DNA from: Haliotis rubra
Lineage: Eukaryota
DNA length: 64,000 nucleotides
Direction: 5' to 3'
Assembly (NCBI RefSeq): GCF_003918875.1
Contig: NW_025767102.1
Location: 868,001-932,000 of the forward strand
The position numbers were made by a program, and so were the translations under genes. Shown piece after piece: positions 9,761 through 64,000 of this stretch. How positions within the stretch are numbered: position 1 is the first letter of the stretch; each line of letters starts with the position of its first letter. Below the pieces are notes generated by a model that was given only the letters and a program-made list of their open reading frames with translations, was not told the origin of the DNA and ran no database searches.

Positions 9761-9786
9761 GAACTTTAGGGGAATGAATCCCATTC

Positions 9787-12726: not shown

Positions 12727-13972
12727 AGTGAGTTAAGATTTTAAGTCACATCAGCTATATTTCAGCCATATCATCACTAAATCAAGCTATAGATATATAA
12801 TAATTAATAGTAAATTATATACACCTGTCAACGAAGGACAGTAAAACAACAAGACTATCACACATATAAATTTAAAACTAGTAATTAAGTCTAAAACACT
12901 TTAACTATACAAAACAATACAATATAAACCCAGGCTGTAGATCGCCAACAACTGAAGGTAGATCACCATACTAGAGACCATGGGGACTTACAGTACTTTA
13001 GCTACCTGCATGGACCCTACCTGGATTTACACCATCCCTTCGAATTCAGTCGCTGACGATTGTAGGAAAATTTTGCCCAAATTAAAATCACAAAAATGCT
13101 ACGTTTAAAAAATTCTGGTAAGTTTAAATTTACTATGAATGTATTTGGACTCACTTACCCTCTCTTACAATACTTCAACCCCCTTTGAGGATACAGCCCT
13201 GAACAATCTTAGTTGATAATCTAAACTACCAATAATAAAACATTTATCTATTTGCAAATCATGTAAAAATTTACGCAACAATTCTATTTCGTTAAAAAAA
13301 AACAATTTTTAAATGATAATTATCATCGTAGAAAATATCCCTAACTGTTTTGACATTGAAATATTTATCCCTTGTGATGGAAAAATCAATACATCCTAAG
13401 TGATGCAAAATGGAGGATCTTCGCCTTTTAACAGATACTCATGAGTATATCTAATATGGCATATCCGACATCATCGTATGACCTCCTCAAATCTGGACTG
13501 ACAACCCAAGTAGGTGTAACCGATGGTTGCCTTTATATGATGTAATTTATTCATACATACTTGGGTGTCCCACTTCTTTTGCAGATCACGGATATAAGAT
13601 CTAATAACAGCTATATAATCAGATTATTGGATAAGAAGTGGTATCACATATATGTTGAGTGCTGCCTTAGCAGCAAAATCGGCCGTTATGTTTCCAGAAA
13701 TACCAACATGGCTAATAACCAACAGAAGATGATGTCATACTGGCAAGTAGCAAGATCATTATATAATTCAATTATTTCGATTAAGAGTGGATGTTTAAAA
13801 GAAAGATTTTAAATAGACTGAAGGCACGAACGAAAGTCAGAACAGATCACATACTGTTTATATTTGAGGTATTTACCAATATATTTTAGGGTTGTTAATA
13901 TGGCGTTTGCTTCGGCTGTGAAAATTGAACTGACGTTGGGTAATCTAGAAGATATTGTTCTGGATACCAATA
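12727..13972 (-). mobile_element. 5'-truncated I-group LINE (RNase H end and 3'UTR)
   Basis: Reverse complement matches 60890-62170, including the terminal stem-loop and ACTC tail. Confidence 0.85.
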
Positions 13973-15431: not shown

Positions 15432-17049
15432 TGAATTTGTTACATGTCTTTCCTTTCATTAGCTGCTGACACTGGTAATGAGCTGTAATAGTCCAGTGTA
15501 TAATGTTACCTTGTTTTAGAAAAGGGATATTTGCGAATTTGTATATTTTTATAAACCCATTGACTTCATGTGTAAAAATAATAGAGATTTTTTGTCTTTA
15601 AAAACCACTGTTTACCAGACGTGTACATTTTGTTGGTGGTGTCCAGACACTGACTAGTCCATTCAACCTATATCATTTGTACTCTTGATACTCTCTTCAT
15701 CTCTACTGCCATCAATGTTCTGGGACACAGGCATGATGTATCAAGTTATAGAACAAGTCTTATTCATTGTGGAAAGGATTACCATGGTAGTGTTTGATTT
15801 TGTCCAAAACAGTATCATCTCTCTTGAAAAACACCTGGTAAGAGCCCATGATGTCCCTTCACTTTGTTTACCTCAAGATCAAACTCTTAAAGCTCACCTG
15901 CAAGGCCTGTACCAATATATACAAACGGCACTTCATTCTTTGAGACAAATATGTTCTCAAATTGAAGTTCCTGATAGGTATCTGGAACATTATCGCTTAC
16001 ATTTCATCCGCCCCATTGTAAGAAACAAAACAACGTACAGAGAGCTTCCATAGCATCATATTGTAGATGCAAAACTCCATTCCCATCAGGGGTGTCTTCA
16101 GCAAAGAAAACAAAGGAATCCTTCCTTAGAAATGGCGGTAGATATAAGCTATAGAACTTTTTTCAACGACTGTATGGCAGTATATGTTTCCAGCAACAGA
16201 GGATAGCCTGTATAGGATGCAATAGGTGTGTGCACTTAGCACATGTTGTGGACTGTATGGGCTAATTCAAAAACCGGAGTATTTTCCTTTTCACATGAAA
16301 ACCTGAATATTCCAGATTTCCTCCGCTTGTATTTGACATGTCTTCTCAGTCTTTGCACCATAACAATATATCTGACATACTGTAAGTATTGTTCTGTCAA
16401 TTTTACTGTTTTTGCAAGATCTGTCGCCATTGTCCAGCCTTTGAGTGTGTATGAAACATTGTCTTTAGTGTTTTTTAATATGGATTGTTTGGTTTTATCT
16501 TTTTTGTCAAACATTTCAAAAGAATGTACAACAGGTGGTTTACTTTTGTGTTGAGTGGAGAACAGACCTTGCTCATGATGTTTCAGAAATGATTTGTCCT
16601 TTAGATGAATAGATAGGGACGTGCCTGTTCAATAGAGACGTTTAAGTTTTGGCGATATCTTGCACACTGTATTTGAATTTTATTTTTGGCAATGGAACAG
16701 AAATTAGTGGAATGTATGGATACTTTCGTAATTAAGGAGAAACCCGAATAGCCGAGTCGAATAAAAACACAAGAAAATATGTTCATTTCATAACAAGAAT
16801 GACATAATAGTTTTCAAATATCAATGTATAATGGTAGCACAGTAGCTTCCAGTAGATATATCTTTTTCACAGAAATATTGTATCTATATTTGTAGATCTA
16901 ATTTATTTATAATTAAAGCACTAACATTCAGTAAGTATCACAGCATCAGTAGGTAGCACTGTAGCTTTCAGTTGTCATAATATATACATAGTTCATGTAC
17001 AGTTATCCAAGTTTTATGAGGTTGGCCACCGCACCACGGTACTGGAGTG

Positions 17050-18270
17050 GGGTCTTCTCTCCGCCACTTGGCGTGTTTTTAACCTCATGATACTGTGGTT
17101 ATCTCTCTGTGGATTCGCTTGCGACTTGGAGGAGCAGCCCCAAAGTCGAGGTGTCTCAGCTTGACTCTGTCAGCCATCTCGATCCTCCAAAACAAAGCGA
17201 ATGATGTTGGAGTGGCGTTGTGGAAGGGCCCTGTTTACCTAACTGTTGTTGTTGGTCCTTGATCCTACGGTGTCATGATGGTTCCAAAATGACAGGGGGA
17301 AGCGGCTGTCGTAGTCCACCCATGTCACGACCATGTAATCCTCAAAGTCCTCGATGCGGTCAGAGGTTGGGGAGGAGTTCATGGCATCAATCCAAGTGTT
17401 TTGAACCCGATCTTGAGGTAGCAAGGCAAGGGCGGATGCTCTCCTGATGAACTGCTTCACAGCTGGATCCTCCTTGTATGCAACTGCGAGACCTAGTGCT
17501 TGTGTCTTCCTCCACTGGGCTTTGGAGAAACGGAAGTAGCATCCCTTGGTCTCTGCATTTGGAAATTCCGTCTCTATGGCCTGGATGGTGGCAAGCTCAA
17601 AGTCTGTCTGTATTCTTGCTGGGGCCAAGGACGATTCAGTTCCTCGCCCTGAGGAGACAGTCTTACGTAGGTGGTCTCTCAACGATCAGGCAGAAGGGCA
17701 AAATCTAAGGGGTATGACACAGAGATAAATGATGTAAACCTGATCCCAAAGCTCAGGAAATGAGGTGAAAGTTCCATCCATGTAGATGGTATCAGCGGTC
17801 TGCAACACCTGGAGCAGTTCAGTGACAGAGAACACCAGAATCTTGTCTTGTTCTCCACTAGAAAGAAGAAGGAAACGGCGTCCATTACTTGTCTTTGTCG
17901 ACTTGTCTTCCAAATCTACATCTCGGAGGGTAGCAGGTAACGCTGGTATGGTCATGCGGCGGTGTCTGCAGACAGAACTGCTTACGCTGGGAAAAGATGG
18001 AATAACGAGTAGGTTCTGTCCATTCTCTACTGCAAGCTGTTCTGTGTACAAGGTCTGCATCTCTGTAGTCTCTTCTCTTGCTCGCTTGCGCAGCGCAGTT
18101 CACTGTCAAACTTATGCTTGGTACCGTCATCAGGTGCGTGGTTGTGCTCGTTCTGTGTACGAAGGAAGTCTCCGACAGTTGAACATCTCCCTATGCAGGT
18201 CTTGACCATGCATCTCCAGCTGATGCAGATCTGTCTGACCTTATTTCTGGTGTCCGGGTGGCAATTGTCC
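17050..18270 (-). mobile_element. MULE transposase pseudogene with FLYWCH-like N-terminus
   Basis: WRCMVKTC..HNH, YMDGTF, IQTDFELA..KGCYFRFSKAQWRK, WNHHDTVGSRTNN; frameshifted. Confidence 0.9.
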
Positions 18271-19598
18271 TGCTCCCGCGTAATACAATATAAAATGTAA
18301 AAACTGTCACAATTTATTTATATTTTCATTCAAAGCACTAAATTACCGTTCTAGCATAAATTACGTGACTATCAATTTAATTAACTTTCATGCACATTTC
18401 CTAGCAATCATTAGCAATTTATTCATAGACCTATTCAAGCATTCGATTAAAAATTTGATACGAGCTGTTACAATCATGTTTTAGAAGACAAATATGCATA
18501 TACTCTCTCTGTGCAGCGTACTCGCATAACTATATTATATATTTAATGCATAATATTAACACATGCTCGAGTACATCAGCTTTACACCTAATGTATACGG
18601 TTTGTTTTGTTTTCCTTTTCCCTTTTGTTTACGTTTCACCTAGTGACTGACGTGCTGTCATCCCCATTGATAGGAGAGATTTCTTTCCACATTTCCCAAT
18701 GTTTAAATGAATCCGACTGTTCTGGATTAAAGCAGCCAGTAAGATAAATGTCACGCAAATATAAAAATAGTTTGAACGCTTCATTCCATAAAACAAACAT
18801 GCAAAAAGTCTGTTGGCATGAAAAACCCTGGGAAATATAAGTTCAAAAAGGCAATTGCATCTAATGCGTCAAATTTGAAAACGATCCTCTGTATGCCTGC
18901 CAAAATACCCTTTGTAATAATCCTGATATAAAATACTTTTTGTACAAGAGTCAATTGTACATCGTTTGAGCTGCAAAAGCATAGTTTTTCAGATATCTTC
19001 TGGTGGGAGAGAACTGGCTATTTTATTATTGCATCATCAGATCATTGATACAGCTGAAACTACATGTATGTTTTGCCAATTCGAGCAGAAAATTCAATTC
19101 ACATGCAGATTGGAACAGATCAGCAAGAAGGACGTCATCAAAGTATATATTGTCACTGACGGGGTCTATACACAGAGCAGGTACCCCGTCAGTAGCAATA
19201 TATACCTTGATGCTACTTTTGCGTTGACAGTCTATGTGACAACGTCAAGGAACAAAAAGCGCCATCATTTTACCCCAAATCTTTGAGAAATAATGTCATA
19301 CACTTGCTTCCAAGATTACAATAATGTATCAGAAGGGAAAGTGCTTTTGAACATTGAAGATTTATTGTGAATATGGAAAGCCTTTTGTCACGAATATCTT
19401 CTCCAACATAAAATATGTTATATCTAATGTAAAATGAACTTGTGAAATATCCTTTCTGTTGTCGATTAAAACATCAATTATGGTAATTTTCCACATAATA
19501 ATTAAACAAGAGAACACATTTGATTCCAATTTTTGAGCATGGTAAAATGCATGTTAACACAAATTTGGCGACAGAAATATTATGCTCTTTACAAGGAT

Positions 19599-22500
19599 AT
19601 GGCCGGACGTCACACACAGGCACGGTTTAACTTCATCCTCAGGAAAAAATTGACGCCTCGTGATATCGCAGACATGTTCAACGATTTTGCTGAAGACTAT
19701 GAACAGGTAACATAAAGTAGTAACATAAATCCGTCGTTTAGTTTCAATGTTCAATGCTTAAAGTTTTTTAAGGATTACATCCCGAGGCCCAAGGATTTTA
19801 CTCAGGGCATATGGATAACATTTCAAAATTTGTCCAAAATGAAGAACATAAAGTTGTCTCTATCTCTATCTTTCTTTGTACTTTGTGCTGACATGGTGCA
19901 AATCCAGTTCTGCCTGTAGGTGTATTTCAACATCGGTTGGAGACCTTATGAAGTTGTCGGAGACTTCATGGCTAAAATCATTCCAGAGGAAAATAGATCT
20001 AAACTGAAAGTCTTGGACGTTGGAGCTGGCACAGGTCTTCTCGGAAATAAGGTAACTAATAGCTCAAAGACCTTTTCACATCTATGGGAAATCTCTTCTA
20101 AAAGCAGAATCGATTGTACAATTCTGACTACATCATGAGCATATGTTTATGCATTACTACCAATTGCCACCACTGCCCAACAGGTGGCACTCATCAAAAT
20201 CAAATACATGTCAGTTGTTCAAAATAAGGTCAAAATAAGGAATTGCCTTTTGTCACTGATGCGTCAAATTTGAAAAAAATCACCAACATGTCTACAATAA
20301 ACTGTTTTAAAATTTTACTGAAATCTTTGACTGTGACCTTGACTGTAACAACTTCTAAGCAAGTATCATATATGACTCTCTTTGAAATCTTGATTAAAAA
20401 GAACATGCTCGGTTGTACAAAAAAGGTTGAGAAATGTAAACAGCAAAGGCTGGACGATATTTAAGGAAAGTTTCAATTAAGTTCAGTTTGCGATTTATAG
20501 CCTACAGTATCCTTACTGATACGACAGCTTCTAATACCACTAAAATATTGTAGATTTGTACTTTCCGAATCTTGAAAACATTTTATAATATATATTTACT
20601 GAATATTTTACTCTAGAGAATGAAAACATCACATTTTCTTCTCAAATGTTTTGCATGTCGTAAAAGTGGTGTTGACAGGGTTGACAACTTGTTATAGGTT
20701 ATTTTTGACATTCTTTGGTTATGGATGGGACATCTCTTCAGACCGATATTGAGAGACAGTCACAAATCTGCCTCAACAAAATTTATAGTTGGTGTCTTAA
20801 AAACGAGTTTAAGTTTTCTAAATCCAAAACCAATTGTAAACATTTCTGGAGAAAAAAACAAACCTCATAAAGACCCTGAATTAAATCTTTAAATGGAAAC
20901 ACCCATCAAAATTGTGAAGGAAGCTAAGTTCCTTGGTCTCATCTTTGACTCGCATTTAACCTTTCTGCCACATATTAAATCCCTAAAAGCCAAATGCCTC
21001 AAGACGCTCGATTTGTTAAAAGTCGTTTCAAATCAAAGTGGGCAGGGGACCAAACTACCCTCCTACACTTATAGAGATAACTGTCCGATCGATACTTGAT
21101 TATGGCTCCATCGTATATGGTGGGGCCTGTAAAAGCAACCTCAAACTACTTGATACTGTCTACCACCAAGGTCTTTACGTTGAGGCTTCGCCGTATTAAA
21201 TTATCTTTACAATATATCACAAAGCTACAGTCAAATGAATTCGATCCTGCACACAGTTGTGTTTTTAATCCTCTTTATGAGGATCTATATAATAAAAAGT
21301 CCTGACTTGTTCCACCTCTTGGGATAAGAATTAAACCATTCATTTCTGATGCAGGCACTTAACTGGAAAAGATATCTCCTTCCCGTCTTCTTTCTTCTCC
21401 TCCTTGGCAATTGATGATGTCACAAGTTGACCTAACACTAACAACATTTAAAAAGTCAGAAACAAATGAATTACAATATTAACAAGAATTTATACAATTA
21501 CAAAATATATATAATACATACAAATCTTTATTTCCAAGGATGGTGGAGCAGTTGCTTGTGCCACTGTCATTGGATCCAGAACTGTATCTTCCAGGTTACC
21601 AGGCGACAGCTCTATTTTCACAGCCGAGGCTAACGCCATATTAACAGCTCTTAGATATATTAATAAACACCGTAACTATAAACAATGCGTAATATTTTCA
21701 GACTCGCTTTCTTCCCCTCAGGCTATTAAGAATTTGTCTTCTTAACATCCATTTTTAATTGCAACAACTGAATTGTATAATGATCTGGCTACTGGCCAAT
21801 GCGACATCGTCCTCTTGGTTACCCAGCCACATTGGAATTTCTGGTAACACGATGGCCGATTTTTGCTGCTAAAGCAGCACTCAACAAATCTGTGGCACCA
21901 ATACTTATTCCATACTCTGATTATCCCCCGCAACGCATTTTGCGGGGGTATTAAAATGGTCTCCGTCTGTGTGTGCGTGCGTCCGTGCACATTTGTCTTT
22001 TCCGGAGCAGAACTTTAAAACCGTTCAATATTTCTTCACCAAACTTGGCACATAGATAGATCTGGTGGTGTACTGGTGCCTTTTGGTAGTTTTGGATTTC
22101 TGAATAAAATATATTTGCATTTCCATGCCAACAAGTTTGACTTAGACTGAAACTGGTGGTAGTGCTCCTTTCTGGAGCAGAACTTTTAAAACCTTTCAAT
22201 ACTCTCCTTCCACTTTTCTATATACACGCCAAAACATTTGACATAATCTTAACTCGTAGACATATTCATGAAGAGTATTTTGCCCTTGCGGGGGATATTG
22301 ATGACTTTGTCTTCTTGTTATAAAGCAATCATCAGATCTTATATCCGTGATCTGATGCAGAAGAAGTGGGACACCCACTCAATGACTCACCCTTCAGACC
22401 GAAAATACTTGTAACTGAGCATTTGTACTTAATACTTTTCAGCTAAAGAATCATGGATTCACACACGTCGATGGTTTGGATCCAGCAAAGAATATGCTGA

Positions 22501-25500
22501 ATGTAGCCAAAAGGCGCAACATCTACCAAAGATACATCTGTGCATTCATTAACAAAGACAGAAACAATGCCATAGAAACGGGTGAGAAACACAAAGTAAA
22601 TGCTTAGTGTGGTCATTTGCATTGGGTCGACATAACTGATATCAAAACCACTCAAATAGAAATATGTCTGAGATTTATTATTAAAATATTTATCAGATGT
22701 TATATGATAAAATCATGATTTTCATCAACGTGAATTGTGCTCGGTTTTTAGGTGAAATGTGCATGGCGTCATGGGCTATTTATTTCTAATGAACGTTGTT
22801 AGCCATGCTGGTTGTATCTGTCAGTGTTACAATTGGTCTCATGGGTTTCACCAAAGTAGTAAACGGATGACTCCAAGATCACCTTGGGCATTCCTCAAAT
22901 ATCAAGCTGAAAGACCGCTAAGGGATAAATATTTCACCACTGTTTCATTTTCATTTAATTATTGGTTTTTAAACAAAATTGATTTAATTGATGAATTTTG
23001 ATTACGATATTCTGTAGATAGATGTATTTTAATGATTGGTAATTTAGATTAGTAACTTAGATTGTTAGTGGCTGTACCCTCAATGGGGGTTAAAGTATTA
23101 TAAAATTATTGTCCACCTGAGAGGGTACGTAAGTCCCGAAACATTTAAAGTAAATTTCAACTTACCAGATTTTTTTTAAAGTAGTATTTTTGTGATTTTA
23201 ATTTATGGCTACATTCGACTACAATCGCTAGCGGCTGAAGGGATGATATATATCCAGCTAGGGTTCATGCAGGTAGCAAAAGTACTGTCAATCCCAATGC
23301 TAGCATGGCGATCTTCAGTTGTTTGCGGTCAATAGCCTATTTGTAAATTCTATTGACCAAAAGTAGGTTTCTACTTTTAAAGATAATAATATTATAGATT
23401 ATATAGATGATGCCCATTACCTACCCACACACAATTATCTGAGTAGTACAGGGGGGGTTCTGCCGCAGATGCGGCTTAGAGGCTTATTTGTGGGAATTAA
23501 GCCTTACAGCCCCCATTAAAAACATCCTTCGATGTGCAAAAAAAGAGATAGAAAGGTTAAAAAGTAGCAAAACGTCCCCGGCAGCCACACTTCCCCAAGG
23601 GTGAAATCGAAAGATTGATGGTTGCACATTTTTCTCCCAAGGGGAATTGCGTCGGCTGCCTTTCTCTCGCCGTGAGAGTGCCCCGCTCAGCTAGGCCCTT
23701 TTGACTGCCCCAACTGATGTGATCCTGATTCCTTACCGAAACACCACAACCATCACCACTGAAAGTTGCAAGGAATCCACTGAGGCAACGGCGGAATACT
23801 AACTGATAATGCATAGCTGCGCCACTATCCATTATAAGCCCGCACCACTCAACCAATTGCGCTACCAGGGACTTGATAGCTAAATTTCGGTTTAACGGGT
23901 CTATCCTGAGATTGCATCATCCTCTTAAACCGGGCTCCGTCTATAGTAGCGCACAGGATGTCTGAAACCAGTTTTATGATGTCATTCCACTTCCGCTTCA
24001 AACATTAAAAATGAGATCGCTCACTTCGAACACGTTTGGTGGCTTTTCACCTCGCATTGAGGTTTTTCTGTATGTAAATCGATGTTTTCCAGGCCAACGG
24101 ATGTTTACTCCCGTTATAATTTCAACTTCTCGGTCGGGTGATGCTTCCCCGAGAAAGACTTCGATATAAAGCATAGAATTGTTTGGAATCCTTTTGTGAA
24201 ATCGGTCATGTCTTCGAATTCAAGCACCAACTTACAAAACTCGTAGTTCGACTATCCCGCCGACTCGCTAGCAAATGACCCGCTTTATTCGGGATGAGGC
24301 TCATGATCACACTCCTTCGTTGCGAGGGGACGTAAGCCGCGATGAGAATCCCCTTATTGAGGACTTTCGGTAGATAATTATCCCTCGGCTCTACAAACAC
24401 GTAGGGAAAAACGAGGGTGATATCGAGTAGCCAGTCGATTTGTGAGGAGATCAACGTCCATTGGTTATCATCGGTTAGGACGAACTGGTACAACATGTTT
24501 TTTAAGAGACCTCGGGCCTCGACATTGTCTAAATCGCCTAGATTGCCATCGAATGCTGGGACCATCACCCATTTGTTATTGTCGTTGAGGACGAGATTGT
24601 ACTGGGTGTTTTTCAAGAGCCCTCCGGTTATGACATCGTCTTAATCTCCTAGGTTACCACCACCACCACTGCATCCCCTCGCCTGTAAGTGTTGCTTCTT
24701 AATTCTAAACCGTATATTTTGCCTTCGACCCCAGGTTCGTCGAAGCCGCACGTGTGAAAGGACGTTGGCCTTGAATATTATCGGTCGTGCTTACCCGGTC
24801 GAGATGAACGAACACCTCGTGATAGACCACGAGGCTTGGTAATTTCGAACCTGTGACGGTGTCTCAGGGTTGTACGTTGTTCGACGGCAACCCGAGAGTT
24901 CTCGCCAAGGGCCTACCGAATCGGATGGGATTTTCCCCATTCGTGAACGTCAGCGTGCCATTCGACTCGTTGAGTTTGAGGCTGGCTCCAATCGGTTTCA
25001 AAATGTCATAGTTGAGCATACACACCCTATAATGACCGTCGGACAACTCGTGGCGATTTTCATCGATGAATAGCTTGTTGTTCCCTTGATGTTGACTGAT
25101 GTTCGTCCATCTTGGGTAGTAGGTGAGATCGCATAGCATGACTTCGAGGTCCCCCGACGTGTTATCGATCGCGTGCAGCAGTAAAAGGGGCTCGCCGTTC
25201 GTGATTCCCGGGAGCGTGATGTACATGTTACACATATACGAGAGACTGTGGTATACTTTCAATATGTCTACACCCAAGTACCAGGCTGGAGTGATTTGTC
25301 CTAAAAGCAATACGAAGGTCACCACTACCGATCTCACGCACATGAAGATCGTGGTGGATGCAATGGAGGGTTCCCACTTTCGAGCTCGATTTATCAATGT
25401 TTTTCAAAGTATAGGCTGACGATCACGAACGTCAAGGCAGTCCACGCATGGTTTAACAACCCGATGCCGTTCTGGCAGAATCAACTCAATTTTGCCGCGT

Positions 25501-29174: not shown

Positions 29175-30776
29175 GAATCTAGAAAAGTCAGTTCCTTATT
29201 ACGTACTATCTTTTGTTAGCCTTTTCATTTGTCAAGTAAATATAAGCGATGCCCATGTTTCAAATATGTATGCATCACTGATGACACATTTCCAAAAGTA
29301 GAAGTTAAATTAAACATGTAAATCCCACTCTATTCATTCTAAACTTGTGGATGTTGCGTCAATGGCCATTATTTTGTTCGGGAATCCATGGACTCACAGA
29401 CTAAACGAAAGTTCTTGATTGGTGTAATGGTTTTTGGTCGCACTGACCAGAAACGTTTTGTGGTGATTATTTCAGATCGATACCAACTTGTTTCCCTCTA
29501 AAAACTAAAGCTTAAAAACTGGAAATGTGTTTCCCCAAACAAGATACAAACAAAATAGAGGATAGATTCATGCAAACACACACAACATAAATTACTCACT
29601 CACTCATGATAATCCTGACAGTAGATTTCCAGCTACAACAATATGATATCGATATGAGATTAGCTTATGAATAATTGAATCTGCAGTTGAACATTTTCAG
29701 AATGTTAACAATATGCATTATAAATCCAGCATTGCAACTGAGACTTTTTGTCTTGTTCCATTATATATGATATATCTTATGATATGAAAAGGCAATATGG
29801 CCAGTTGATCCATTCAGTTTTATAAAATTAATACAGTATTCCAGTAAATGATTCAGCGTTCTCAAGAGCCTCCTTCCAGAATCTTGAACTGGTAATGGAC
29901 ATGAACATAGTAGTTGCTATAATGAATGTGCCCTTTTTAAATCATCTCAGAGCAATTTAGCCAGTACCTTTATGGCACTTGATACTGTTATGTGACAGTG
30001 TGTGGTATTTTTATTGTGTAACAGTGTTCCAAGTGTTGGTCACTGTACGCGTTGATATACATTTGGGGACAGTGCAGTAGTGTGCTCTACATATAGATTC
30101 TGTTAGACTTCTATTAGATCAAAATAGAAACATCTGGAAGTTACGGGGGTCTACGACCCAATGGGTTGCTGGAGAATCTCCTGGAGTCGTTTGTCATAGG
30201 CATGTAAGGGACGCCTACTCTTGCTTCTCATCTCAAGTTATATGAAGACCAGCATTGAGAGTGATGATCGTTATACCCTTAGTATTCTGCTTAGCCTTTT
30301 CTTGGATTACTGTTACTGAGAGTTGAATATTGCCTTCATTGCTGTAATGGCTTCCCTTGTATTATTTTACCTTTGAATCTGTAGTGCCGCTCTGTTTCGA
30401 CTCGTGAAAGCGATACCGTTGTATTGATTTGTGACCTCAGTTAATTTTAGAATACAATCATTAATTACATCACATGGCTTTGTTGTTTGTGGATTTCACA
30501 GCTAGTTCATTTAAGGATTACTTTCCTCTTGGAAATCAAGACGTAAGCATATCCTTCATGTTTCCTTCTTTGATTATATAAAGGCGTTTCCAGGAACCGA
30601 CTTATGATTTATTCAAAACAAGCAAGACATTTCAAACAATGCACTCGACATACGACAGTATAAGGTTATACCTTGCTTAGTAAAGTGTTTGGGTTTCCAA
30701 TCAGTGCACAATAGAGGTCCCTCGGGTAATTATCTTTACATATATTACACAAGTGTTACGTTTCTCCAGCTCTCCA

Positions 30777-31218
30777 GACCCGTAAAGATCCGGGTTAGAC
30801 GATTGGTCTTCATTAACCCATGCTTGTCGTAAAAGGCGACTAAAGGGATCGGATGGTCAAGTTCGCTGACTTGGTTGACTGACTGACTGACTGACTGACT
30901 GAGTATGGTTTTACGCCGTTTTAGCAATATTCCAGCAATATCACGGCGGGGGGCACCAGAAATGGGCTTCACAAATTGTACCCATGTGGGGAATCGAACC
31001 CGGGCCTTCGGCGTGACGAGCGAACGCTTTAACCACTAGGATACCCCACCGCCCCGACTTGATTGACACATGCCATAGTATCCCAATTGCATAGATTGAT
31101 GCTCATACTGTTGATCACTGGATTGTCTGGTCCAGACTCGATTATTCACAGACCGCCTCCGTAGAGCGGGAATATTTCTGAGTGCGGCGTTAAACAACAA
31201 ACCAACCAAACCAACTAA
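30777..31218 (+). mobile_element. Family 2 SINE interrupted by a family 1 SINE
   Basis: TSD CCAGCTCTC (30766-30774, 31219-31227). Confidence 0.8.
30880..31055 (-). mobile_element. Family 1 tRNA-SINE nested in a family 2 SINE
   Basis: 12-bp TSD GACTTGRTTGAC; (AGTC)n tail. Confidence 0.88.
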
Positions 31219-31239: not shown

Positions 31240-31680
31240 TGAGGAGTGAGTGAGTTACGATTTAGAGTCACATTGGCAATATTGCAGCCATATCGTGACT
31301 AAAATAACATATACTTTAATAATATATAAAGTTTTTCCTAAAATCTGTCAACAAAGGACAGTAAAACAAGTAGGTTATCACAGATAGAAATTTAAAACTA
31401 GTATGTAAGCATTAAAACATTTATCACAATATAGGATGATACAATATAAAAACCGGGCTATAGGTCACCAACAACAGAAGGTAGATCACCAAACAAGGGA
31501 CTATGGGGACTTACAATACCTTTGCTAACTGCAGGGGCCCTAGATGGATTTACATCATTCCTTCAGATGTTGGTCATTTTTGTACAATTTAGCCATACGT
31601 TAAAAGAACACATATACTGCGATTAAAATCACGGAAAATGAAAAATCCTCTGAATGAAATGGGACTTGCACACCCTCTCC
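31240..31680 (-). mobile_element. I-group LINE 3' end fragment
   Basis: Reverse complement of the 3'UTR with terminal stem-loop and (ACTC)n tail. Confidence 0.8.
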
Positions 31681-53514: not shown

Positions 53515-53680
53515 TTCATGAGCAGCCTCATGACTAAAGCGTTCGCTCGTCGCTGTGGTTTGTTTCTCCACATAGGTACGATATGTAAACCTCATTCCGG
53601 GTTACTCCCGCGATGATATTGAGGTGACTATTGCTAAAAGCGGCGTAAAACCCACTCACTCACCTACTCACTCTCTCACA
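53515..53680 (+). mobile_element. Family 1 SINE, degenerate; its ACTC tail is the LINE insertion target
   Basis: aaagcgttcgctcgtc..gctaaaagcggcgtaaaacccactcactc. Confidence 0.75.
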
Positions 53681-53688
53681 CAATCACT

Positions 53689-53746
53689 GGCACCCGTGAA
53701 GAGCCACCTCCTCGTGGTGGGTGCTGGGTAACGCTAAGAGCTCTTC
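53689..53746 (+). ncRNA. Predicted minimal HDV-like self-cleaving ribozyme at the LINE A 5' end
   Basis: P1 GGCACCC/GGGUGCU, P3 ACC/GGU, L3 UCCUCGU, P1.1 CC/GG, J4/2 GCUAA (catalytic-position C 53734), P2 GAAGAGC/GCUCUUC. Confidence 0.85.
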
Positions 53747-56205
53747 GACCGCCGTGTGGACCCGGGGGTATATTTGGTCCACCAACCTGTTTGTCGTGCG
53801 TTTCGCCCCTTTGTCGGTGGAGGACGGGATTCTGGTGGTTGAGGGCACTGGGAGCCTGGAACCGTGTTCTTTTTTGCCCAACACACCACTTCGCCCCTTA
53901 CTTCACCTAGATGGGTGGTAGAACTGGCCCGGTTCTATCAATCGGCTGGTCATGGAAAACGTTTATTTGGATTCATCATGACATAATATTATTGGTTAAA
54001 GACCGTGACAACGTTATCAATGCAAATTTACATTTTGCCTAGAGAGTCCTATGCCAGAAGGCGGTGGCACATGGGCCAATCTGGTGATATAGACCTCTAA
54101 ATTCTGAGTTTCTTAAGAAGAATGTCATGGGCCGAACCAGCCTGACACTTCTTCTTTTTGATTTCTTAGCTATTTATGTCTGTATTTCTGGAGTATAGCA
54201 TCCCCGTAGCTCTGGTCGTGCAGTTTGGTTTCCACTGCAGGATCGTCCTTGTTGACACTCGATGGTGGGTGGAGATCAGGGTTGCTGAAAATCATTCTAT
54301 TTCCCCTGGTTCAAAAAACGAATAAACGTCGACATCTTTCGACACCATCTGATGATGAAGTCTCTTCAGCGATAGTGGATTCATGGCCAAGATTCTTGGT
54401 TATTGAAACAGCAGATGGAAGTCCATTAAAATTGAACCACTTTGCTATATCGATGGGCATCAAAGGTGTCTGTGGAGAGGTAGCAAACGTCACACGTCTT
54501 CGTTCTGGCTCACTTCTTGTTGAATGTGCCCGGAGGCAACAATCTGTAAACTTGTTGGGATTACAACAGTTTGTTAATACACAGGTTGTTGTCTCTGTGG
54601 ACAGGACATTGAACTCTTGCAGAGGTATCATCCGTGACCGATCTCGTTGTCTGGCGTACATGACAGAAGAAGAAATTTTTGATGAATTGAAATACCAAGG
54701 AGTAACTGCTGTTAAACGGTTTACCAGAAAACAGGAGGCAGATATCATTAAAACAAATACTTACCTGTTCACCTCTGGGCTGTCGGCTCTACCAAAAGCT
54801 ATTAAAGCTGGTCACTTTAATATCCCAGTTGATGTCTACATACCTAATCCGCTGCGATGTTTTAAGTGCCAAAAATCTGGACACGAAGCCAAGTCATTCA
54901 CTCATAAAACAGTATGCTCTCGTTGCAGTGGGACTCATGATAACAATGCATGTACAAAAGACATCAGATGTGCTAACTGTAACGGTGAGCACATGGCATC
55001 GTCCAAATCATGTCCTAATTTTGTACTCGAGTCAAAGATTTTTTAACTCAAAATCACTAACAACTTCTCCTACCAAGAATCCAAAAAGTTAATACCTGGA
55101 CAGTCTCAAACTACTACAACTCGAACTTAGTCAGCCACTGTTTCTACCCCTGTTCATCATCCTGGAACCAAAGTTTCACCTTCATGCCAGACAGCCATAT
55201 CTTGGGTAAAGAGCAAACAAGTTACAATCAACGAATACACCCACTCCTCTCAAAACGAGCAAAGTTCGTCAACATCTGCCTCACAGACGGAACAAGAACC
55301 AGAGACACAATCAAATCCAGGAAAAGTTAGCCATTTGTCAAATAAAGAAAAGAAAAAGCTGCGAAGAGCAAATGCTCTCCAGCATTTAGAGGTACCATCT
55401 ACCTCGTCAACATCCGTGGCGGTTCATAATCCGTTTGGACCTATTGATATGGAGGTCACTCCCTCACAGCCAGGGCGAGGGAGTAGACGTTCCTCGCGGT
55501 CAAGATCCCCGGTTGAAGTGCCATGAACAACTCTATTAATTTAATACAATGGAATTGCAGAGGCCTTAGGAATAATTTTAATGATCTACAATTATTATCA
55601 CAAGGTTTTAATCCATCGGTTTTTAGTTTACAAGAGACGTACTTGAAAAGTACAGATAAAATTTGAATTGCGCCGGTACAATTCATTCTCACCTCCAGGT
55701 GATAAAGCCACTGGCGGCGCCTCTTTTCTCGTGAGGCAGGGTGTTATCCATAGCCTGGTTCCTCTTAAAAGCAATCTTCAGGCTATTGCTGTCCGTCTTT
55801 CTTTACAGATAACCTTTACGCTTTGTTCTTTGTATATTTCTCCTTCTTCAGCGCTTCAGCAGTCCAATCTTCAGGATCTCTTTGACCAACTTCCTCAACC
55901 ATGTATAATCATGGGAGATCTAAACGGCCATAACCCTTTGTGGGATAATGCCGAGACCAACAATAAAGGAAAAACCATTAAGGACTTCATTTCAAACAAT
56001 AATTTATGCATCTTTAATGATGGATCTGTCACATATATACACCCTGGTTCGGGAACTTATTCTGCACTTGATCTGTCGCTCACAGACCCAAATATTTATA
56101 ACGAATTTAAAAGGTCAGTCGACGATGACCTGTGTGGAAGTGACCATTTTCCTACAATACTTTCCGCTATAAACCCGAGTGATGACCCATCTACTACAAG
56201 GTGTA
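53689..56205 (+). mobile_element. I-group (I/Nimb-like) LINE A: 5'UTR, gag-like ORF1 and AP endonuclease; 3' part absent
   Basis: ORF1 about 54310-55526 with CFKCQKSGH, CSRCSGTH and CANCNGEH knuckles. ORF2 from 55523 with QWNCRG, MGDLNGH and GSDHFP; it breaks where LINE B starts. Confidence 0.92.
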
Positions 56206-56263
56206 GGCACCCGTGAAGAGCCACCTCCTCGTGGTGGGTGCTGGGTAACGCTAAGCACTCTTC
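56206..56263 (+). ncRNA. Predicted minimal HDV-like ribozyme at the LINE B 5' end
   Basis: Same fold; catalytic-position C 56251; one C-A mismatch in P2. Confidence 0.8.
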
Positions 56264-59200
56264 AACCCCCCGTTGTGGACTCGGGGGGATATTTGGTCCA
56301 CCAACCTGTTTGCCGTGCGCTTCGCCCCTGTGTCGGTGGAGGACGGGATTCTGGTGGTTAAGGGCAATAGGATCCTGGAACCGTGTTCCTTTTGCCCAAC
56401 AAACCACTTTGGCCCTTACTTCACCTAGGCGGGTGGTAGAACTGGCCCGGTTCTATCAATCAGCTGGTCACGCCATGCCCTGTGCATAGTGAATATTTTT
56501 GCACATTAACTCTTTTGGGGTTTTGGCCATTTTGATTTGTATTTATGAATTATTGATCTATTTAATTGCCTAGAGTCCTATGCCAGAAGGCGGTGGCTCA
56601 TGGGCCAATCTGGTGATGTTACCTCCAAATTCAATATGTATCCTATTTCTTGTCATGGGTAGAACCACCCTGACATTTAATTTGGTATACAAATATTGCT
56701 TTTTGCGTCATACTCGCTGGATTATAACATCCTTGTATCCCAGGTGTCAGCATCTTGGATATCCGGTGCTAGCTGGTTCATCTCGTCACGAAAAGAAAAG
56801 ACGTCTTGACAAAATAGATCATTCCACGGAACACATTCAGAAAAACGTTGCCTCATTGGCTCGATTTCTTGTGATAGAAGCTGCGGATTTTCTTCCTCTC
56901 AAACTCAATCCTTTTGCCATTTCCAAGGTTATTTCTGGTATTTGCAGAGAGGTGAAAAATGTTACTTGTCTCCGTAGTGGCTCACGTTTGGTCGAATGTT
57001 CACGGAAACAACAATCTCAAAATCTGTTATCCATCAAAACATTTGCAAATATAGAGGTTGGTGTCTCTATACACAGAACATTAAACTCTTGCCGTGGCAT
57101 CATCCGCGACAGGGCACGTTGCCTCGCTGATATGTCTGAGGAGGACATTGCTTTAGAATTAAAGGATCAGGGCGTTTCAGCAATGAAACGGTTCACCTTT
57201 AAGAAAGAGGGCATTATTACAAAAAAAACATATCTCTTGACCTTTTCTCTCTCTTCACTTCCAGCATCTATAAAAGCAGGCTATTTCAATATCGGGGTGG
57301 ATGTGTATGTCCCCAATCCACACCGATGTTACAAATGTCAGCATTGTGGACATGGCTCGCAGTCTTGCCGAAACTCTGTTGTATGTCATCGTTGTGGCGA
57401 TCGTCATGACGGTTCTGACTGCGACAAAGATTACAAGTGTGCAAACTGTAATGGTGCACCTTCTGCTTCATCGAAATCCTGCCATGTGTTCCAGCGTGAA
57501 TCGCAGATTATGAAACTTAAATGCGAGAAACATGTTTCATACCTGGATGCCCAAAAATTGCTAAATCAAACCTCTACTCCTTTAAACATTACCTACGCTG
57601 CGGCAGTTACCTGCTCTGTGGCAGTGTCCTCTACTGCGTGTCAGACTGACTTGACTTGGGATCCTATTGCCCTTGACTTGGGTCAAGTCAGAGAAACCTA
57701 TTTCGTCAGCTTCAACCATTAAACCTGCCACAGTCATTCAATCTACGTCTGGTTCTCAGACTGATGAAACTGAATCCGAGACATCATCGCAAACGTCTGT
57801 TTTGCAACCAGCCTTGAATAAAATTAAAAGAAGAAAGGAAAAGGGATTACTAGGGAAAAACTACCTGTTGTTCCTTCACCTCCAGAGGTACCAGAGGTGC
57901 ATAAACTCATTTGGACCTTTAGATATGGAGGTTACTCCGTCCTCACAGGGCAGGCAGAGGAGCTTATCCTCCTCGCATTCACGAGAGAGATCACCAATAG
58001 AGGCGCCATGACTCAATTGTCTATTTTAATGCAATGGAATTGCAGAGGACTAAGAAATAACTTCAATGAGATACAATTACTGATACAATATATTCAGCCG
58101 TCAGCACTCTGTCTCCAAGAGACATATTTAAAACCTACAGATAACTTTACTTTGAGACAATACAGCGATTATCAGTCCTTTTCTCCTCCAGGAGATAAAG
58201 CAACTGGAGGTGCTTCTATGTTAGTACGGCAGAGTATAATACATAGCCCTGTCCCCCTTAATACCAATCTTCAGACTGTAGCTGTTCGACTGACCCTGCA
58301 CATTGCTTTGACTCTGTGCAGCTTATATATCCCTCCATCTTCTGATGTCCGTCTGTTAGATCTTCAGAATCTGTATGATCTGCTTCCAAAGCCATGTATC
58401 ATCATGGGCGATCTGAATGGACACAATCCGCTTTGGGGAAGTGTCCATACCAAAAATAAAGGTAAAATCCTCGAGGAATTTATATCAGATAATAATCTCT
58501 GTATTTTCAATGATAATTCAGCCACTTATTTATATCCATCTACGGGAACATATTCTTCCTTGGATCTGTCACTCACCGATTCAACCTTATATAATAAATT
58601 TGAATGGATGGTTCATGATGACTTGTGTGGGAGTGATCACTTCCCTACCATTCTTAAAACGATCAACCCTGGTGATGATCCACCTTTATCGAGAAGGAAC
58701 TTCGCCAGGGCTGATTGGTCATTATATAAGACACTATGTGATGATCACTTAAAACATGATGTTTTTGCGAACAGCAAAGATCCTATACAGCTGTTTGCCG
58801 ATTTCTCAATCACATTGCTAACCATACTTTCCCCAAGTCCTCAGCAATTCCACATATTCGTAAACCATGGTTTACTAATGAGTGTAAACAGGCCAGAAAA
58901 AGTAGGAAGAAAGCTGAAAGGTTTTTCGCAAACATCCTACAGTCCATAATTTAGATAAAGTTAAAATTTTAAATGCCAAGGCTCGACGCGCATTTAAACA
59001 GAATAAGCGTCAGTCTTGGAGGAACTATGTTTCCAAAATAAATTCACGTACACCTATGTCCAAGGTGTGGAACATGGTCCAAAGAATAAAGGGCAAAAGC
59101 TCTAAATCTACTGTACACCATCTGAAGGATTGTGATAATCTCTTAACTCATAACACTGGCATAGCAAATAAACTTGGCGAAACGCTTGCGAAACATTCTT

Positions 59201-62173
59201 CATCATCAAATTATGTCCCTGAGTTTCCAAAACACCAGAAACAACAGGAGAAGAAAAGAATATTTTTTTCTCAGACAATGGTGAAGATTATAATGAATTA
59301 TTTTCACTCCATGAGTTACATACCGCTCTTGAGCAAGCTCATGATACAGCAACAGGGGCTGAAGATATCCACTATCAGCTCCTAAAGCATTTGCCCGAAT
59401 CGTGTTTGGAAACACTGCTAAATATATTTGATATGATATGGACTACAGGGAATTTCCCAGCTTCCAATCTCTTTAACGAGTTGTGTCTGTAAAACCATGG
59501 AACGAATGGTAAACAATCGATTGACATGGAATTTTGAAACCAATAACCTATCACAAATATCCAATGTGGTTTCAGGAAAAATCGTAGTACCATTGATCAT
59601 TTAGTACGTTTAGAGTCCTTTGTCAAAAATGCTATAGTAAATAAACAACATGCAGTATCGATATTTTTTTATCTCGAGAAAGCATACGATACCATCTAGA
59701 AGCATAGCATTTTGAAGGGTTTACATGATTTGGGTTTGAGGAGCCGTTTGCCTCTTTTTATATCACAGTTTTTAAAAGGCAGGCAATTTCAAGTCCGAGT
59801 GGGCTCAACCCTGTCTGATCATTATAATCAGGATCAGGGTGTCCCACAAGGTAGTATTTTGTCTGTCACGCTATTTAGTATCAAGATTAAACAGTTTATC
59901 CAAGGTTTTAAAAGATTCAGTCGACGGATCACATTTTGTGGATGATTTTAATATTTCTTGTCGTGGTAAAAATATGCATACTATTGAACGGCAATTGCAG
60001 TTGTGTTTAAATAAAATAAATAAATGGTGTCTTGAAAACGGCTTTAAATTTTCCAAGTCCAAAACTAATTGTCTACATACACTTTTGTAGAAAATATAAG
60101 CCTCATAAAGACCCAGAACTATCTTTAAATGGCATTCCCATCAAAGTTGTCAAGGAGGCCAAGTTCTTGGGTCTAATTTTCGACTCCCATTTAAAATATT
60201 TGCCGCATATCAAATCCCTTAAAGATAAATGCCTGAAGGCCCTTGATCTGTTGAAAGTTGTTTCCAACTCAAAGTGGGGAGGGGATTAAGCTACCCTCCT
60301 CCACCTATACCGATCATAGGTCCGCTCGATACTTGATTATGGCTCGATCATATATGGTGGAGCCTGCAAAAGCAACTTAAAACTTTTAGATTCTGTTCAC
60401 CACCAAGGTCTGAGACTTGTTCTTGGGTAATTCAGAACATCTCACGTTGACAGTCTCTATGTTGAGGCAGATGAGCCTTCTCTTAACCAACGCCGTATAA
60501 AATTATCATTACAATATATTACCAAACTATATTATAACGAGTCTAATCCTGCTTTTAATTGTGTCTGTAATCCTCTCTATGAGGAATTGTACAACAAAAA
60601 GTCTTCTCTTGTCCCGCCTCTTGGGCTAAGAATTCAACCCTTCATTTCTGCTGCCGGCATTGAGCTGGACAATATAGCTCCTTCCCGTCTTCTTTCTTAT
60701 CCTCCTTGGCAATTAGTGAGACCACAGGTTGACCTCACACTGACAAAGTTTAAGAAAGCAGAAACTACTGAACTACAATATAAACAAGAATATAATCAAT
60801 TAAAAAATAAATATAATACATACAAATCCTTATTTACAGATGGGTCCAAGGATGGTGGCGCACTGGCATGTGCCACTGTCATTGGATCCCGAACAATATC
60901 TTCTCGACTACCAAATAACAGCTCTAGTTTCACAGCAGAAGCTAACGCCATATTAACAGCTCTTAAATATATTAATAAACACCGTAAATATAAACAATAC
61001 ATAATCTTTTCCGATTCTCTTTCGTGTCTTCAGGCTATTAAAAATCTTTCTTGTAAACATCCACTTTTATTAGAAAGTATTGAATTGAATAATGAGCTTG
61101 CTACTGGCCAATGCGACATCGTCTTTTGTTGGTTACCCAGCCATGTTGGCATTTCTGGGAACCAAGCCATGTTGGCATTTCTGGGAACACAATGGCCGAT
61201 CTTGCTGCTAAGGCAGCACTCAACAAATGTGTGACACCACTTCTGATCCCATACTCTGATTACAAAGCTGCTATTAGATCTTACATCCGTGATCTGATGC
61301 AAAGGAAGTGGGACACCCAAGTAGATATCAATAAATTACATGCAATAAAACTAACTATCGGTTACACCTACTTGGGTTGTCAGTCCAGATTTGAAGAGGT
61401 CATCATGCGACGACGTCGCATTGGCCATACAAGGTATACTCATGAATACCTGTTAAAAGGTGAGGATCCTCCGTTTTGTATCCCTTGTGATGAAAGAATC
61501 ACGATCAAGCATGTCTTGCTTGACTGTGTTGAATATTCCATCACAAGGGATATCTATTTCAAATCACGAACTATGAAGGATCTTTTTAGGCATATAAGTT
61601 CTCATTTAATTATTGCATTTTTAAAAGACTTAGATTTGTTAATTGATTTGTAAAAAGATAAATATTTTATGATTGGAAGTTTGAATTAATAACTCAAATT
61701 GTTAGTGGCTGTATCCTCAAGGGGGGTTAAAGTACTGTAAAATTATTGTCCTCCTGAGAGGATACGTAAGTCCACAAACATTCAAAGTAAATTGAAACTC
61801 TCCGCTGTTTTTAATCGTAGAATATGTGTGTTTTTAAATGTATGGCTAGAGCTGTCTACGTTGCTAACGGCTGAGGGGATGGTGTAAATCCGGCTAGGGT
61901 CCATGCAGGAAGCAAATGTACTGTAAGTCCCCATGGTCCCTAGTATGGTGATCTACCTTCAGTCGTTGGCAATCTCTAGCCTGTTTTTATATTGTATTGT
62001 TATTTATAGTTCCAATATTTTAGTTTGCTAGTTTTAAAATGATATCTGTGATACACTAGTAGTTTTACTGTTCTTCGTCAACAGGTTTTTTAATGTCTAA
62101 CTTTATTGATCTTTAATATAATTATAAACTGTTCTCGTCACGATATGGCGTTAAATATTAACTCACTCACTCA
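56206..62173 (+). mobile_element. I-group (I/Nimb-like) LINE B, near full length, decayed (ORF1 gag; ORF2 APE-RT-RNase H-CCHC)
   Basis: ORF1 about 56790-58011; ORF2 58008-61653 with frameshifts. Motifs QWNCRG, GSDHFP, GVPQGS, FVDD, FTDGSK, FSDSLS, WLPSHVGI and CIPC..H..C; (ACTC)n tail. Confidence 0.95.
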
Positions 62174-62859
62174 CTCACACAATCACAACTCACTCACTCA
62201 CCGATGATAATCCCAAATATAGATTTCCGGCCACAACACTATGATTCCGATAAGAGGAATTAAATCTGAACATTAACGTATCCAGAATGTTAATAATACA
62301 TATTATATATCTTGCACTGTAACTGAGCCTTTTTGTCACAAGGAACAATGAATGTCTTGTTCCGTTAATATATGATTTATTTTGTGACACGAAAAAAAAT
62401 GGCCTGTCGATCGATTCATTTTATTAATCAAATACAATATTCCAGAGCGTTAAGGGTCTCTGGAGCCTCCTCTCTGAATTTTGAACTGGTCAAGAGCATA
62501 AGCATCATAGTTGCTATTATGAATGTGTCCTTTCTAAGCAATTTCTGAGCAATTTTGCAAGTACCTTTATGGCACTTGATACTGTTATGGGACAATGGTT
62601 CTTTAGTGTGCAACAGTTTTCTAAGTGCGGTGTGCTCTATGTTTAGATTTGTGCTATATCATGACTTTGCTAGCTCTAAATAGCAACATCTGGAAGCGAC
62701 TGCAGAGAATTACATCCCTATGTGTTGTTGGAGAATCCCCCGGAGTCTTTTTTTTCATAGCTATGTAAGGGGCGCTTTAACCTCTAGGCTACCCCACCGC
62801 CCCTGACATAGGGAAGAAGATAATAAAGCGATTATCCTTTAGTGTGACACTCCGATCAG

Positions 62860-63145
62860 ACTGTAATTGTCACTGGAAATTGCCTATCATTTCAAAATTT
62901 GGCTATAGATTGAGGCAAACGGCCTCGCAATCCCAAATTTGCGTATATCTTTTATAATCCCGTATTTCCATGTAGTGTCGTATGCTTTTTCAAAATAAAA
63001 AAGACAGACACTGCATGTTGTTGTTTTTGATAATGGCATTTTTGACAAATGTTGCTAAAGGCACTAAATGGTCAATGGTACTTCTGTTTTTACGGAAACC
63101 ACATTGTATATCAGTAAGTAGTTGGTTTCCAAGTACCAAACTAGT
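62860..63145 (-). mobile_element. I-group LINE RT fragment
   Basis: QCGFRKNRSTIDHLVPLATFVKNA. Confidence 0.8.
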
Positions 63146-63454
63146 CGATTTCTGATCAGGCATGGTTTGGATTGCAGTCCTCGGGTGGTCCTTCGTGATA
63201 TTATGAAATCTACCTATATTGAACATGAAGGCAACTTATATTTTAAGAAGGAAAACATTAAAACATGTTCGGTAAATTTGGAGGACATTTCCATGTAGTA
63301 TTTCAAGCCCCATGTTACTATATATATTTACTATTAGCAAATTTTTTAAAAAAACCACATAGGATCATTATTGTGAAAATATGTATACATTTGTAAAAGT
63401 TTGTCTCAAACCTTCAGAAGTTCTTCATTTCCACCTTTGTCCTTCTTAATTGGA

Positions 63455-63512
63455 GGCACCCATGAAGGGCCACCTCCTCGTGGTGGGTGCTGGGTCACGC
63501 TAAGCGCCCTTC
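63455..63512 (+). ncRNA. Predicted minimal HDV-like ribozyme at the LINE C 5' end
   Basis: Same fold; catalytic-position C 63500; P2 GAAGGGC/GCCCUUC is a compensatory change relative to A. Confidence 0.87.
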
Positions 63513-64000
63513 AACCCCCCGTTGTGGACCCGGGGGGATATTTGGTCCACCAACCCGTTTGCCGTGGGTTGCGCCCCTGTGTCGGTGGAGGACGGTAGTC
63601 TGGTGGTTGAGGGCAGTAGGATCCTGGAACCGCGTTCCTGTTGCCCAACACACCACTTTGGCCCTTACTTCACCTAGACGGGTGGTAGAACTGGCCCGGT
63701 TCTATCAATCGGCTGGTCACGCCGTGCCCTGTGCATGGAAACATTCATATTGAAATTAATGCGCATTTTTGGAATGCTACCAATGAATGTTATAATTTGA
63801 AATTTTATGATACATTTTTGCGGTGGCTCATGGGCCAATCTGGTGATGTTGACCGCTGAATTCTGTATGTTTCTAAGTTATTGTTATGGGCCGAACCAGC
63901 CTGACAGTGAACTTAGTGGACAAATATAGCTATTCATGTCATATTTGCTGGAGTATATCAGCCCTGTATCCCTGGTGTTTACGTCTTGGATATCCGATGC
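63455..64000 (+). mobile_element. I-group LINE C, 5'UTR (runs off the window)
   Basis: The first about 265 nt align closely with the 5' ends of LINEs A and B. Confidence 0.9.

Follow-up and report, generated by a model that had tools for sequence, protein, structure and literature searches.

A conserved HDV-like ribozyme fold without P4 at the very 5′ terminus of abalone LINEs

A 64,000-nt stretch of the genome of the abalone Haliotis rubra (contig NW_025767102.1, positions 868,001 to 932,000 of the forward strand; hereafter the window, to which all coordinates without a locus prefix refer) contains three plus-strand sites, at 53689, 56206, and 63455, each of which spells out a 58-nt nested double pseudoknot of the hepatitis delta virus (HDV)-like ribozyme type without a P4 helix. 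This conserved fold occupies the exact 5′ end of an abalone family of long interspersed nuclear elements (LINEs), and we consider it highly likely that the sites are the 5′ termini of copies of a Haliotis non-LTR (long terminal repeat) retrotransposon, headed by a P4-less HDV-like ribozyme that releases the element RNA. Judged from its sequence, the abalone fold very probably self-cleaves. The three sites had been proposed in an initial annotation of this DNA and were recovered exactly as described, with C46 at 53734, 56251, and 63500:

53689..53746, plus strand: ribozyme copy A, predicted cleavage site 5′ of G53689, putative catalytic C at 53734
56206..56263, plus strand: ribozyme copy B, putative catalytic C at 56251, one broken P2 pair (C16/A52)
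63455..63512, plus strand: ribozyme copy C, P2 GAAGGGCC/G(C)GCCCUUC, GUCAC replacing GUAAC, putative catalytic C at 63500

Numbered from G1 (53689), the parts of copy A are as follows:

nt 1-7 with 31-37: P1, GGCACCC/GGGUGCU, 7 bp, with a G1-U37 wobble
nt 8-9: J1/2, GU
nt 10-17 with 50 and 52-58: P2, GAAGAGCC/G(A)GCUCUUC, 8 bp, with a bulge at 51
nt 18-20 with 28-30: P3, ACC/GGU
nt 21-27: L3, UCCUCGU
C22 C23 with G38 G39: P1.1, CC/GG
nt 40-44: J1/4, GUAAC
nt 45-49: J4/2, G, C46, and U-A-A

The P4 helix expected between J1/4 and J4/2 is absent, C44 being joined directly to G45-C46.

The structure was assessed on homologous copies from several abalone species. Loci fetched through relatives of the protein encoded by the first open reading frame (ORF1) of the element, from H. 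asinina (L001, L091), H. cracherodii (L002), H. rufescens (L003, L005), and H. rubra (L006), gave ten further copies of the motif; together with the three in the window these made 13 copies, ten of them distinct, which aligned without gaps. With the whole pseudoknot scored across this alignment, standard pairs occupied 99.5% of cells, and compensatory change was found in five of the 20 pairs, with one-sided change in none (0/20). One compensatory pair lies in P1 (6:32, CG/UA) and four lie in P2 (11:57, AU/GC; 12:56, AU/CG; 14:54, AU/GC; 17:50, CG/AU). In a control in which the 3′ partners were slid by 1-3 columns, only 38-47% of cells were paired and 0-1 pairs were compensatory. The remaining variation was confined to unpaired positions, namely 8 in J1/2, 42-44 in J1/4, 47, and the bulge at 51. 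The P2 covariation between copies A and C on which the initial annotation had relied (A14-U54 versus G14-C54) was confirmed and is strengthened by the copies from other abalone species. Among the ten distinct copies C46, A48, and A49 were invariant and position 47 was free (U, G, C, or A), and the G1-U37 wobble was present in all copies, with G1 as the element boundary. C22 C23 and G38 G39 were likewise found in every copy, and their invariance leaves them silent on P1.1 pairing either way.

Similarity among the copies rises sharply at G1. The flanks upstream of G1 were unrelated among all copies, and mean pairwise identity over 12 copies, with positions counted relative to G1, was 32% at -29..0, 90% at 1-58, 72% at 59-110, 83-89% at 111-260, and about 55% at 261-360. 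The three window copies were 76-80% identical to one another over ~500 nt. Similarity had been reported to begin at the predicted cleavage site; by BLAST it did so for the A/B and A/C comparisons, but the B/C alignment started 4 nt upstream of G1. The contrast drawn at the outset between a conserved core and a diverged 5′ untranslated region (UTR) was only partly borne out, nt 111-260 being conserved as well.

Equivalent ribozymes were found in related LINEs. In Gigantopelta aegis, a homologous LINE carried three copies of an equivalent motif with different helix sequences, comprising P1 (CCCCUGC/GCAGGGG), P3 (ACC/GGU), L3 (UCACCGU), a 5-bp P4 (AUUCU/AGAAU) followed by GGC-C-A-A, and P2 (UGUGCAUU/AAUGCACA in one copy and UGUGCUGU/ACAGCACA in another, a difference of two compensatory changes); Rfam model RF02682 scored this motif at 26.8 bits. 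Metagenome contigs scanned with the ORF1 alignment yielded 80 loci, among which a descriptor and an nhmmer profile identified canonical HDV-like ribozymes at 15, many of the remaining loci being too short upstream to judge. In every case the ribozyme shared the strand of ORF1 and lay 500-850 nt before it, with an unrelated upstream flank, and the common layout ran from GG(G)(C/U)AAC through a P4 of ~60-75 nt to GGCUAA and P2. An Rfam E-value scan of 62 kb of loci recovered the Gigantopelta ribozyme and missed those with a long P4. Over this wider set of relatives P3 also covaried (ACG/CGU, GCC/GGC, GCG/CGC, GUG/CAC). One metagenome contig (L090) was considered as a possible transcript and set aside; it is a whole-genome shotgun contig of a metagenome assembly and provides no evidence on RNA 5′ ends.

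In the abalone motif, GGGUAAC is joined straight to GCUAAG. Because related LINEs carry P4, as 5 bp in Gigantopelta and in a long form at the metagenome loci, the abalone form is most readily explained by P4 having been cleanly deleted from the canonical arrangement, and we infer that P4 was lost in this way from a canonical ancestor. The initial annotation was right that P4 is absent, but the GUAAC that it placed in P4's stead is the homologue of the J1/4 linker of the relatives (GGGCAAC or GGUAAC) and not a remnant of P4. Its HDV-like assignment and exact 5′ placement of the motif are likewise borne out by the equivalent ribozymes in related LINEs.

The fold was also recognized independently of the abalone sequences. 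A generic HDV descriptor in which no abalone sequence was used demanded a GC-rich P3 of 3 bp followed immediately by a P1 of 7 bp, an L3 of 6-8 nt whose first bases are YC, a G after P1, and C-N-A-A preceding a P2 of 6 bp or more; applied to both strands of the whole window, it matched only at 53689, 56206, and 63455, and 30 simulated sequences of the same dinucleotide content gave a mean of 0.03 matches per 64 kb. Local E-value scans with RF02682 (HDV-F-prausnitzii) returned 53689-53745 (29.4 bits, E 4.7e-4) and 63455-63511 (25.4 bits, E 0.011), and those with RF00094 (HDV ribozyme) gave 23.2 and 21.3 bits. Both models aligned from model position 1 at G1, with P1, P3, L3, GG, and GCUAAG in register; unlike the abalone sequences, both carry P4 positions, which are deleted in the alignments.

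These features suggest a route from transcript to insertion. The element would be transcribed within a longer transcript, by read-through from a host gene or from upstream repeats, and the ribozyme would cut the phosphodiester bond just 5′ of G1, with C46 of J4/2 as the catalytic nucleobase together with bound Mg2+. Cleavage would leave an RNA with a 5′-OH and G1 as its first base, which would be translated and then copied by target-primed reverse transcription. Since the RNA being copied would begin with G1, full-length insertions would all start at G1.

Several observations weigh against the interpretation of the sites as LINE termini headed by a releasing ribozyme. The five compensatory pairs stem from only ~3 lineages, P3 and P1.1 are invariant within Haliotis, and the alignment contains one pairing break, the C16/A52 mismatch of window copy B. 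Rfam made no call in the whole window at gathering thresholds, the HDV scores lying under them (29.4 against 44 bits for RF02682 and 23.2 against 50 for RF00094). Nested-only minimum free energy folding recovered P1+P3 or P2+P3 and was not better than for shuffled sequences (z -0.3 to -1.3), a null that is expected for a pseudoknot but still leaves the fold without thermodynamic support. The boundary at G1 would also be expected from a transcription start at G1. Finally, a closely related LINE family (L007-L009; ENA ERZ26052287, 9175-15854 each) is without the ribozyme, its exact 5′ end consisting of an H-type pseudoknot and a GUCGUAAGAGGCGAC hairpin; an Rfam scan of the L007 5′ head gave no match. 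Because the members of this family start without a ribozyme, the ribozyme is dispensable to such elements. The family comprises three 99.9% identical 6.68-kb copies with an intact ORF1 (555 aa), an intact ORF2 (1226 aa) encoding an endonuclease, a reverse transcriptase, and an RNase H (EN-RT-RNase H), and a (CTAT)n tail, with the L009 copy flanked by the duplication CTTACCGTGGTG; by its sequence, this LINE is recently active.

Three other explanations were weighed. The fold might be kept but no longer cleave, serving the RNA in another way, for instance in translation without a cap or as a binding site for the element's own proteins, with G1 set by transcription initiation. Additional functions in translation and protein binding have been proposed for the R2 and L1Tc ribozymes (PMC6765202), and the missing P4, the sub-threshold Rfam scores, and the lack of a ribozyme in L007-L009 and in short interspersed nuclear elements (SINEs) fit a loss of cleavage. 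That explanation is nevertheless unlikely. The G1-U wobble, U21 and G26 of L3, the P1.1 pairs, C46, and A48-A49, all residues that we take to be tied to HDV ribozyme catalysis, are invariant in the ten distinct copies, and a structural role alone would leave unexplained both the conservation of C46 and a boundary exactly at the start of P1; moreover, natural P4-less ribozymes do cleave (10.1101/2023.06.13.544163).

The conserved 5′ block might instead act at the DNA level, as an internal promoter of the kind found in the I factor, jockey, and Pr77, with the RNA fold incidental. Internal promoters are common in LINEs of the I group, many of which carry them within their first ~100 bp. The Pr77 of L1Tc is both promoter and ribozyme (PMC3383444), and the LINE-derived 5′ head of mollusc SINEs has been read as a promoter (PMC4758252). 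All five varying helix pairs are compensatory, however, a constraint at the RNA level that promoter function does not predict, and relatives retain the fold with entirely different helix sequences. Promoter activity could coexist with a ribozyme but cannot replace it as the explanation, and we regard a promoter with an incidental fold as very improbable. A chance resemblance within a repeat would account for the absence of an Rfam call at gathering, and three copies of one repeat are not independent; set against the 0.03 descriptor matches per simulated window, the cross-species covariation, and structurally equivalent ribozymes in the same place in distant relatives, it deserves almost no credence.

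The preferred reading, of ribozyme-headed LINE copies, is accompanied in the window by the following element features, which include a target-site duplication (TSD):

53689..56205, plus strand: LINE copy A, 3′-truncated within or just after the endonuclease-coding region
56206..62178, plus strand: LINE copy B, near full length, degenerate (frameshifts), with its body to 62159 and then an (ACTC)n 3′ tail
56580..57722, plus strand: ORF1 of copy B, 380 aa, gag-like, with CCHC knuckles in the family alignment
57897..58949, plus strand: ORF2 fragment of copy B, APE-type endonuclease (PF14529, 4e-21; PF03372, 1.6e-16)
60587..61234, plus strand: ORF2 fragment of copy B, RNase H (PF00075, 4.2e-7)
63455..64000, plus strand: LINE copy C, 5′ UTR only, ending at the window edge
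53680..53687, plus strand: 5′ copy of the TSD, ACAATCAC, which could reach 53666-53687 with part of the preceding ACTC repeat
62179..62186, plus strand: 3′ copy of the TSD, ACAATCAC

The homology of copy A to other copies stops at 56192, just after the endonuclease motif SDHFP, and its final 13 nt are unassigned. The ORF1 of copy B has uncharacterized Haliotis proteins as its best relatives (up to 74% identity), and the ORF1 alignment shows three Cys/His knuckle patterns with invariant C/H columns. Pfam searches of the window fragments, the H. asinina copy, and L007 identified Exo_endo_phos, RVT_1, and RNase_H in ORF2. Together, the gag-like, knuckle-bearing ORF1 and the EN-RT-RNase H ORF2 would fit an I-group LINE. 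As a basis for a clade call (I or Nimb), the names given to ORF2 relatives in databases, ‘jockey’ and ‘X-element’, were rejected, being automatic and uninformative. Relatives of ORF2 at 55-70% identity occurred very widely among assemblies of invertebrates and metagenomes. ORF2 proteins of this clade also appeared under the names of bacterial metagenome-assembled genomes (MAGs; P0166, P0206, and P0214, under Chloroflexota, Candidatus Thiodiazotropha, and a Lucinoma symbiont), and these contigs are most likely host-animal DNA binned into MAGs.

The family ends in a microsatellite, (ACTC)n, and not in poly(A) (62160-62178, 53649-53679, 62187-62202; L005:15520-15550), the 3′ end in other copies reading ...GTTAAAT(A/T)TT-AACTCACTCACTC. 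A 22-nt ACTC-rich match had been a candidate for the TSD and was revised. Because (ACTC)n is the tail of the family, the ACTC part is ambiguous and only ACAATCAC is secure as a duplication; it ends at 53687, a single T (53688) before G1, as was originally noted. An older truncated copy (53524-53679) provided the ACTC-rich tail in which the insertion comprising A and B lies, a hint that the abalone LINE may favor its own tail repeat as a target. Elsewhere in the window, other 5′-truncated copies of the same family, with 72-88% identity to B, were found at 12757-13971 (minus), 20775-23355 (plus), 29576-30214 (plus), 31278-31635 (minus), and 5665-5990 (plus), all without the ribozyme, as LINEs would predict. 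A pair of inverted 270-nt repeats with 73% identity, at 59527-59794 inside copy B and 62872-63138 downstream of it, belongs to a different repeat family with more copies near 11299-11614.

Copies A and B form a head-to-tail chimera, a single TSD enclosing A (from 1 to about 2504) and B together. Nesting of B inside A was ruled out, since the rest of A was not found after B and one TSD encloses both. The arrangement is best read as the product of one insertion event, with the reverse transcriptase running to the 5′ end of the B RNA and continuing on another RNA. Two similar chimeras were found, one in Gigantopelta (L004), in which a copy at 3957-6490 is followed by a new ribozyme start with junction microhomology of 7-9 nt (CTC(G/C)CCTGC), and one in H. 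rufescens (L005), in which a copy at 17502-19767 is followed by G1 at 19768. In all three, a 3′-truncated sense copy of ~2.3-2.5 kb that ends in or just after the endonuclease-coding region abuts the next ribozyme start, which fits template switching or jumping at an RNA 5′ end located at the start of P1. Judged from the junctions, the RNA would begin in vivo where P1 begins, a position compatible with both cleavage and transcription initiation. The L005 array is complex; ribozyme starts together with their upstream flanks repeat at an 8164-bp offset (L005:7513-9400 and 15677-17560), and the bodies that follow are only ~72% identical.

Directly after the ribozyme lies a second RNA domain, an H-type pseudoknot, at 63515-63550 in copy C, about 53749-53786 in A, and about 56268-56303 in B, with equivalents at L005:9396-9480 and L007:9176-9250. 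Its stem 1 pairs a C-run with a G-run, its stem 2 covaries (GUGGACC/GGUCCAC, UGUGGAA/UUCCACA, GUGGUGC/GCACCAC), and in some subfamilies the GUCGUAAGAGGCGAC hairpin follows. SINE-like copies headed by this module of pseudoknot and hairpin (ACCCG UGAAGAUC CGGGU UAGAAU.. CCUUCA) were also found in the window:

about 8040-8125, plus strand: SINE-like copy
about 9680-9770, minus strand: SINE-like copy
about 10055-10140, plus strand: SINE-like copy
about 30780-30865, plus strand: SINE-like copy
41373, plus strand: weaker SINE-like copy

The SINE head has the strand order of the HDV fold without P3 and L3, and ACCCGUGAAGA is common to it and to nt 4-14 of the ribozyme. Matetovici et al. (2016) described a ~70-bp LINE-derived head shared by mollusc SINEs (Haliotis included), two Nimb LINEs, and a turtle RTE, read this ‘LP-SINE’ head as a promoter, and drew an analogy with the Pr77 of L1Tc (PMC4758252). 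Like the abalone module, the LP head of Nimb-17_LMi, I-3_DR, and RTE-9_CPB is a short conserved unit that opens LINEs and SINEs at their very 5′ terminus (PMC4758252). Judged from the SINE copies of the window and from L007-L009, the LP head most likely corresponds to the domain after the ribozyme (nt 59 onward) and not to the ribozyme itself. A further reading is that the 5′ end of the abalone LINE may be a two-part module of minimal ribozyme and LP head, the latter a widely shared pseudoknot that on its own heads mollusc SINEs and other Nimb-type LINEs, and that the LP head would be a non-catalytic derivative of the HDV fold without P3 and L3; the two share the strand order S1 5′, S2 5′, S1 3′, S2 3′. 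We hold this reading as a whole to be rather unlikely. If it were true, the 5′ module taken for a promoter in 2016 would have its origin in a ribozyme, and 5′-OH ends made by the ribozyme would, through template jumping, account for how often head-to-tail chimeras occur.

HDV-like ribozymes at the 5′ ends of LINEs are established for R2 and L1Tc/ingi (PMC6765202, PMC3185411, PMC4035085) and have been reported for Baggins and RTE (PMC6765202, summarizing Ruminski et al., 2011). All of these share with the abalone element the same nested double pseudoknot at the first nucleotides, a predicted cleavage site that coincides with the element boundary, a presumed release from a co-transcript, and a link to template jumping; L1Tc/ingi resembles it further in encoding an RNase H and in the small size of its ribozyme (77 nt). 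R4, R6, and SART were reportedly also listed by Ruminski and colleagues in 2011, and the HDV-like ribozyme at the 5′ end of R2 is said to have been described by Eickbush and Eickbush in 2010. The abalone ribozyme differs from the known LINE ribozymes in its gastropod host, its LINE family, its lack of P4, and its length of 58 nt, and in being known from sequence alone; unlike those of R2, L1Tc/ingi, Baggins, and RTE, it has another conserved pseudoknot domain just behind it.

Metagenomes and gut phages have yielded natural HDV-like ribozymes of a “minimal” form that lacks P4 (10.1101/2023.06.13.544163, citing Riccitelli et al., 2014), and self-scission in vitro was confirmed for the phage theta ribozymes (10.1101/2023.06.13.544163). 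Because such minimal forms exist, P4 is inessential to the HDV-like ribozyme class (10.1101/2023.06.13.544163). Like the abalone ribozyme, drz-Mtgn-1 and its relatives and the theta ribozymes are natural HDV-like cores of similar size without P4; whereas the minimal ribozymes of phages and metagenomes adjoin tRNAs and process 3′ trailers, the abalone form heads an animal retrotransposon and, by comparison with its relatives, would descend from a P4-bearing form. Full-text literature searches that combined HDV-like ribozymes with molluscs, Haliotis, or Nimb turned up no account of the abalone ribozyme. Both parts, HDV-like ribozymes at LINE 5′ ends and P4-less forms, are thus known separately, and what is new is their combination in a mollusc LINE; the novelty lies in the host, in the LINE family, and in a ribozyme of an animal retrotransposon from which P4 is naturally and wholly lost.

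The understanding of how HDV-like ribozymes work is unchanged by these observations. In practical terms, the motif offers an exact marker of full-length copies for the annotation of abalone repeats and a 58-nt natural candidate ribozyme, and it gives reason to ask whether host transcripts that contain sense-oriented copies are cut. With it, gastropods and a widespread RNase H-bearing LINE family of invertebrates would join the LINEs with ribozyme-defined 5′ ends, and a single element lineage would present a natural series of P4 reduction, from ~75 nt through a 5-bp hairpin to none. The minimal P4-less form would then not be confined to phages and could arise by simple deletion in an animal retrotransposon.

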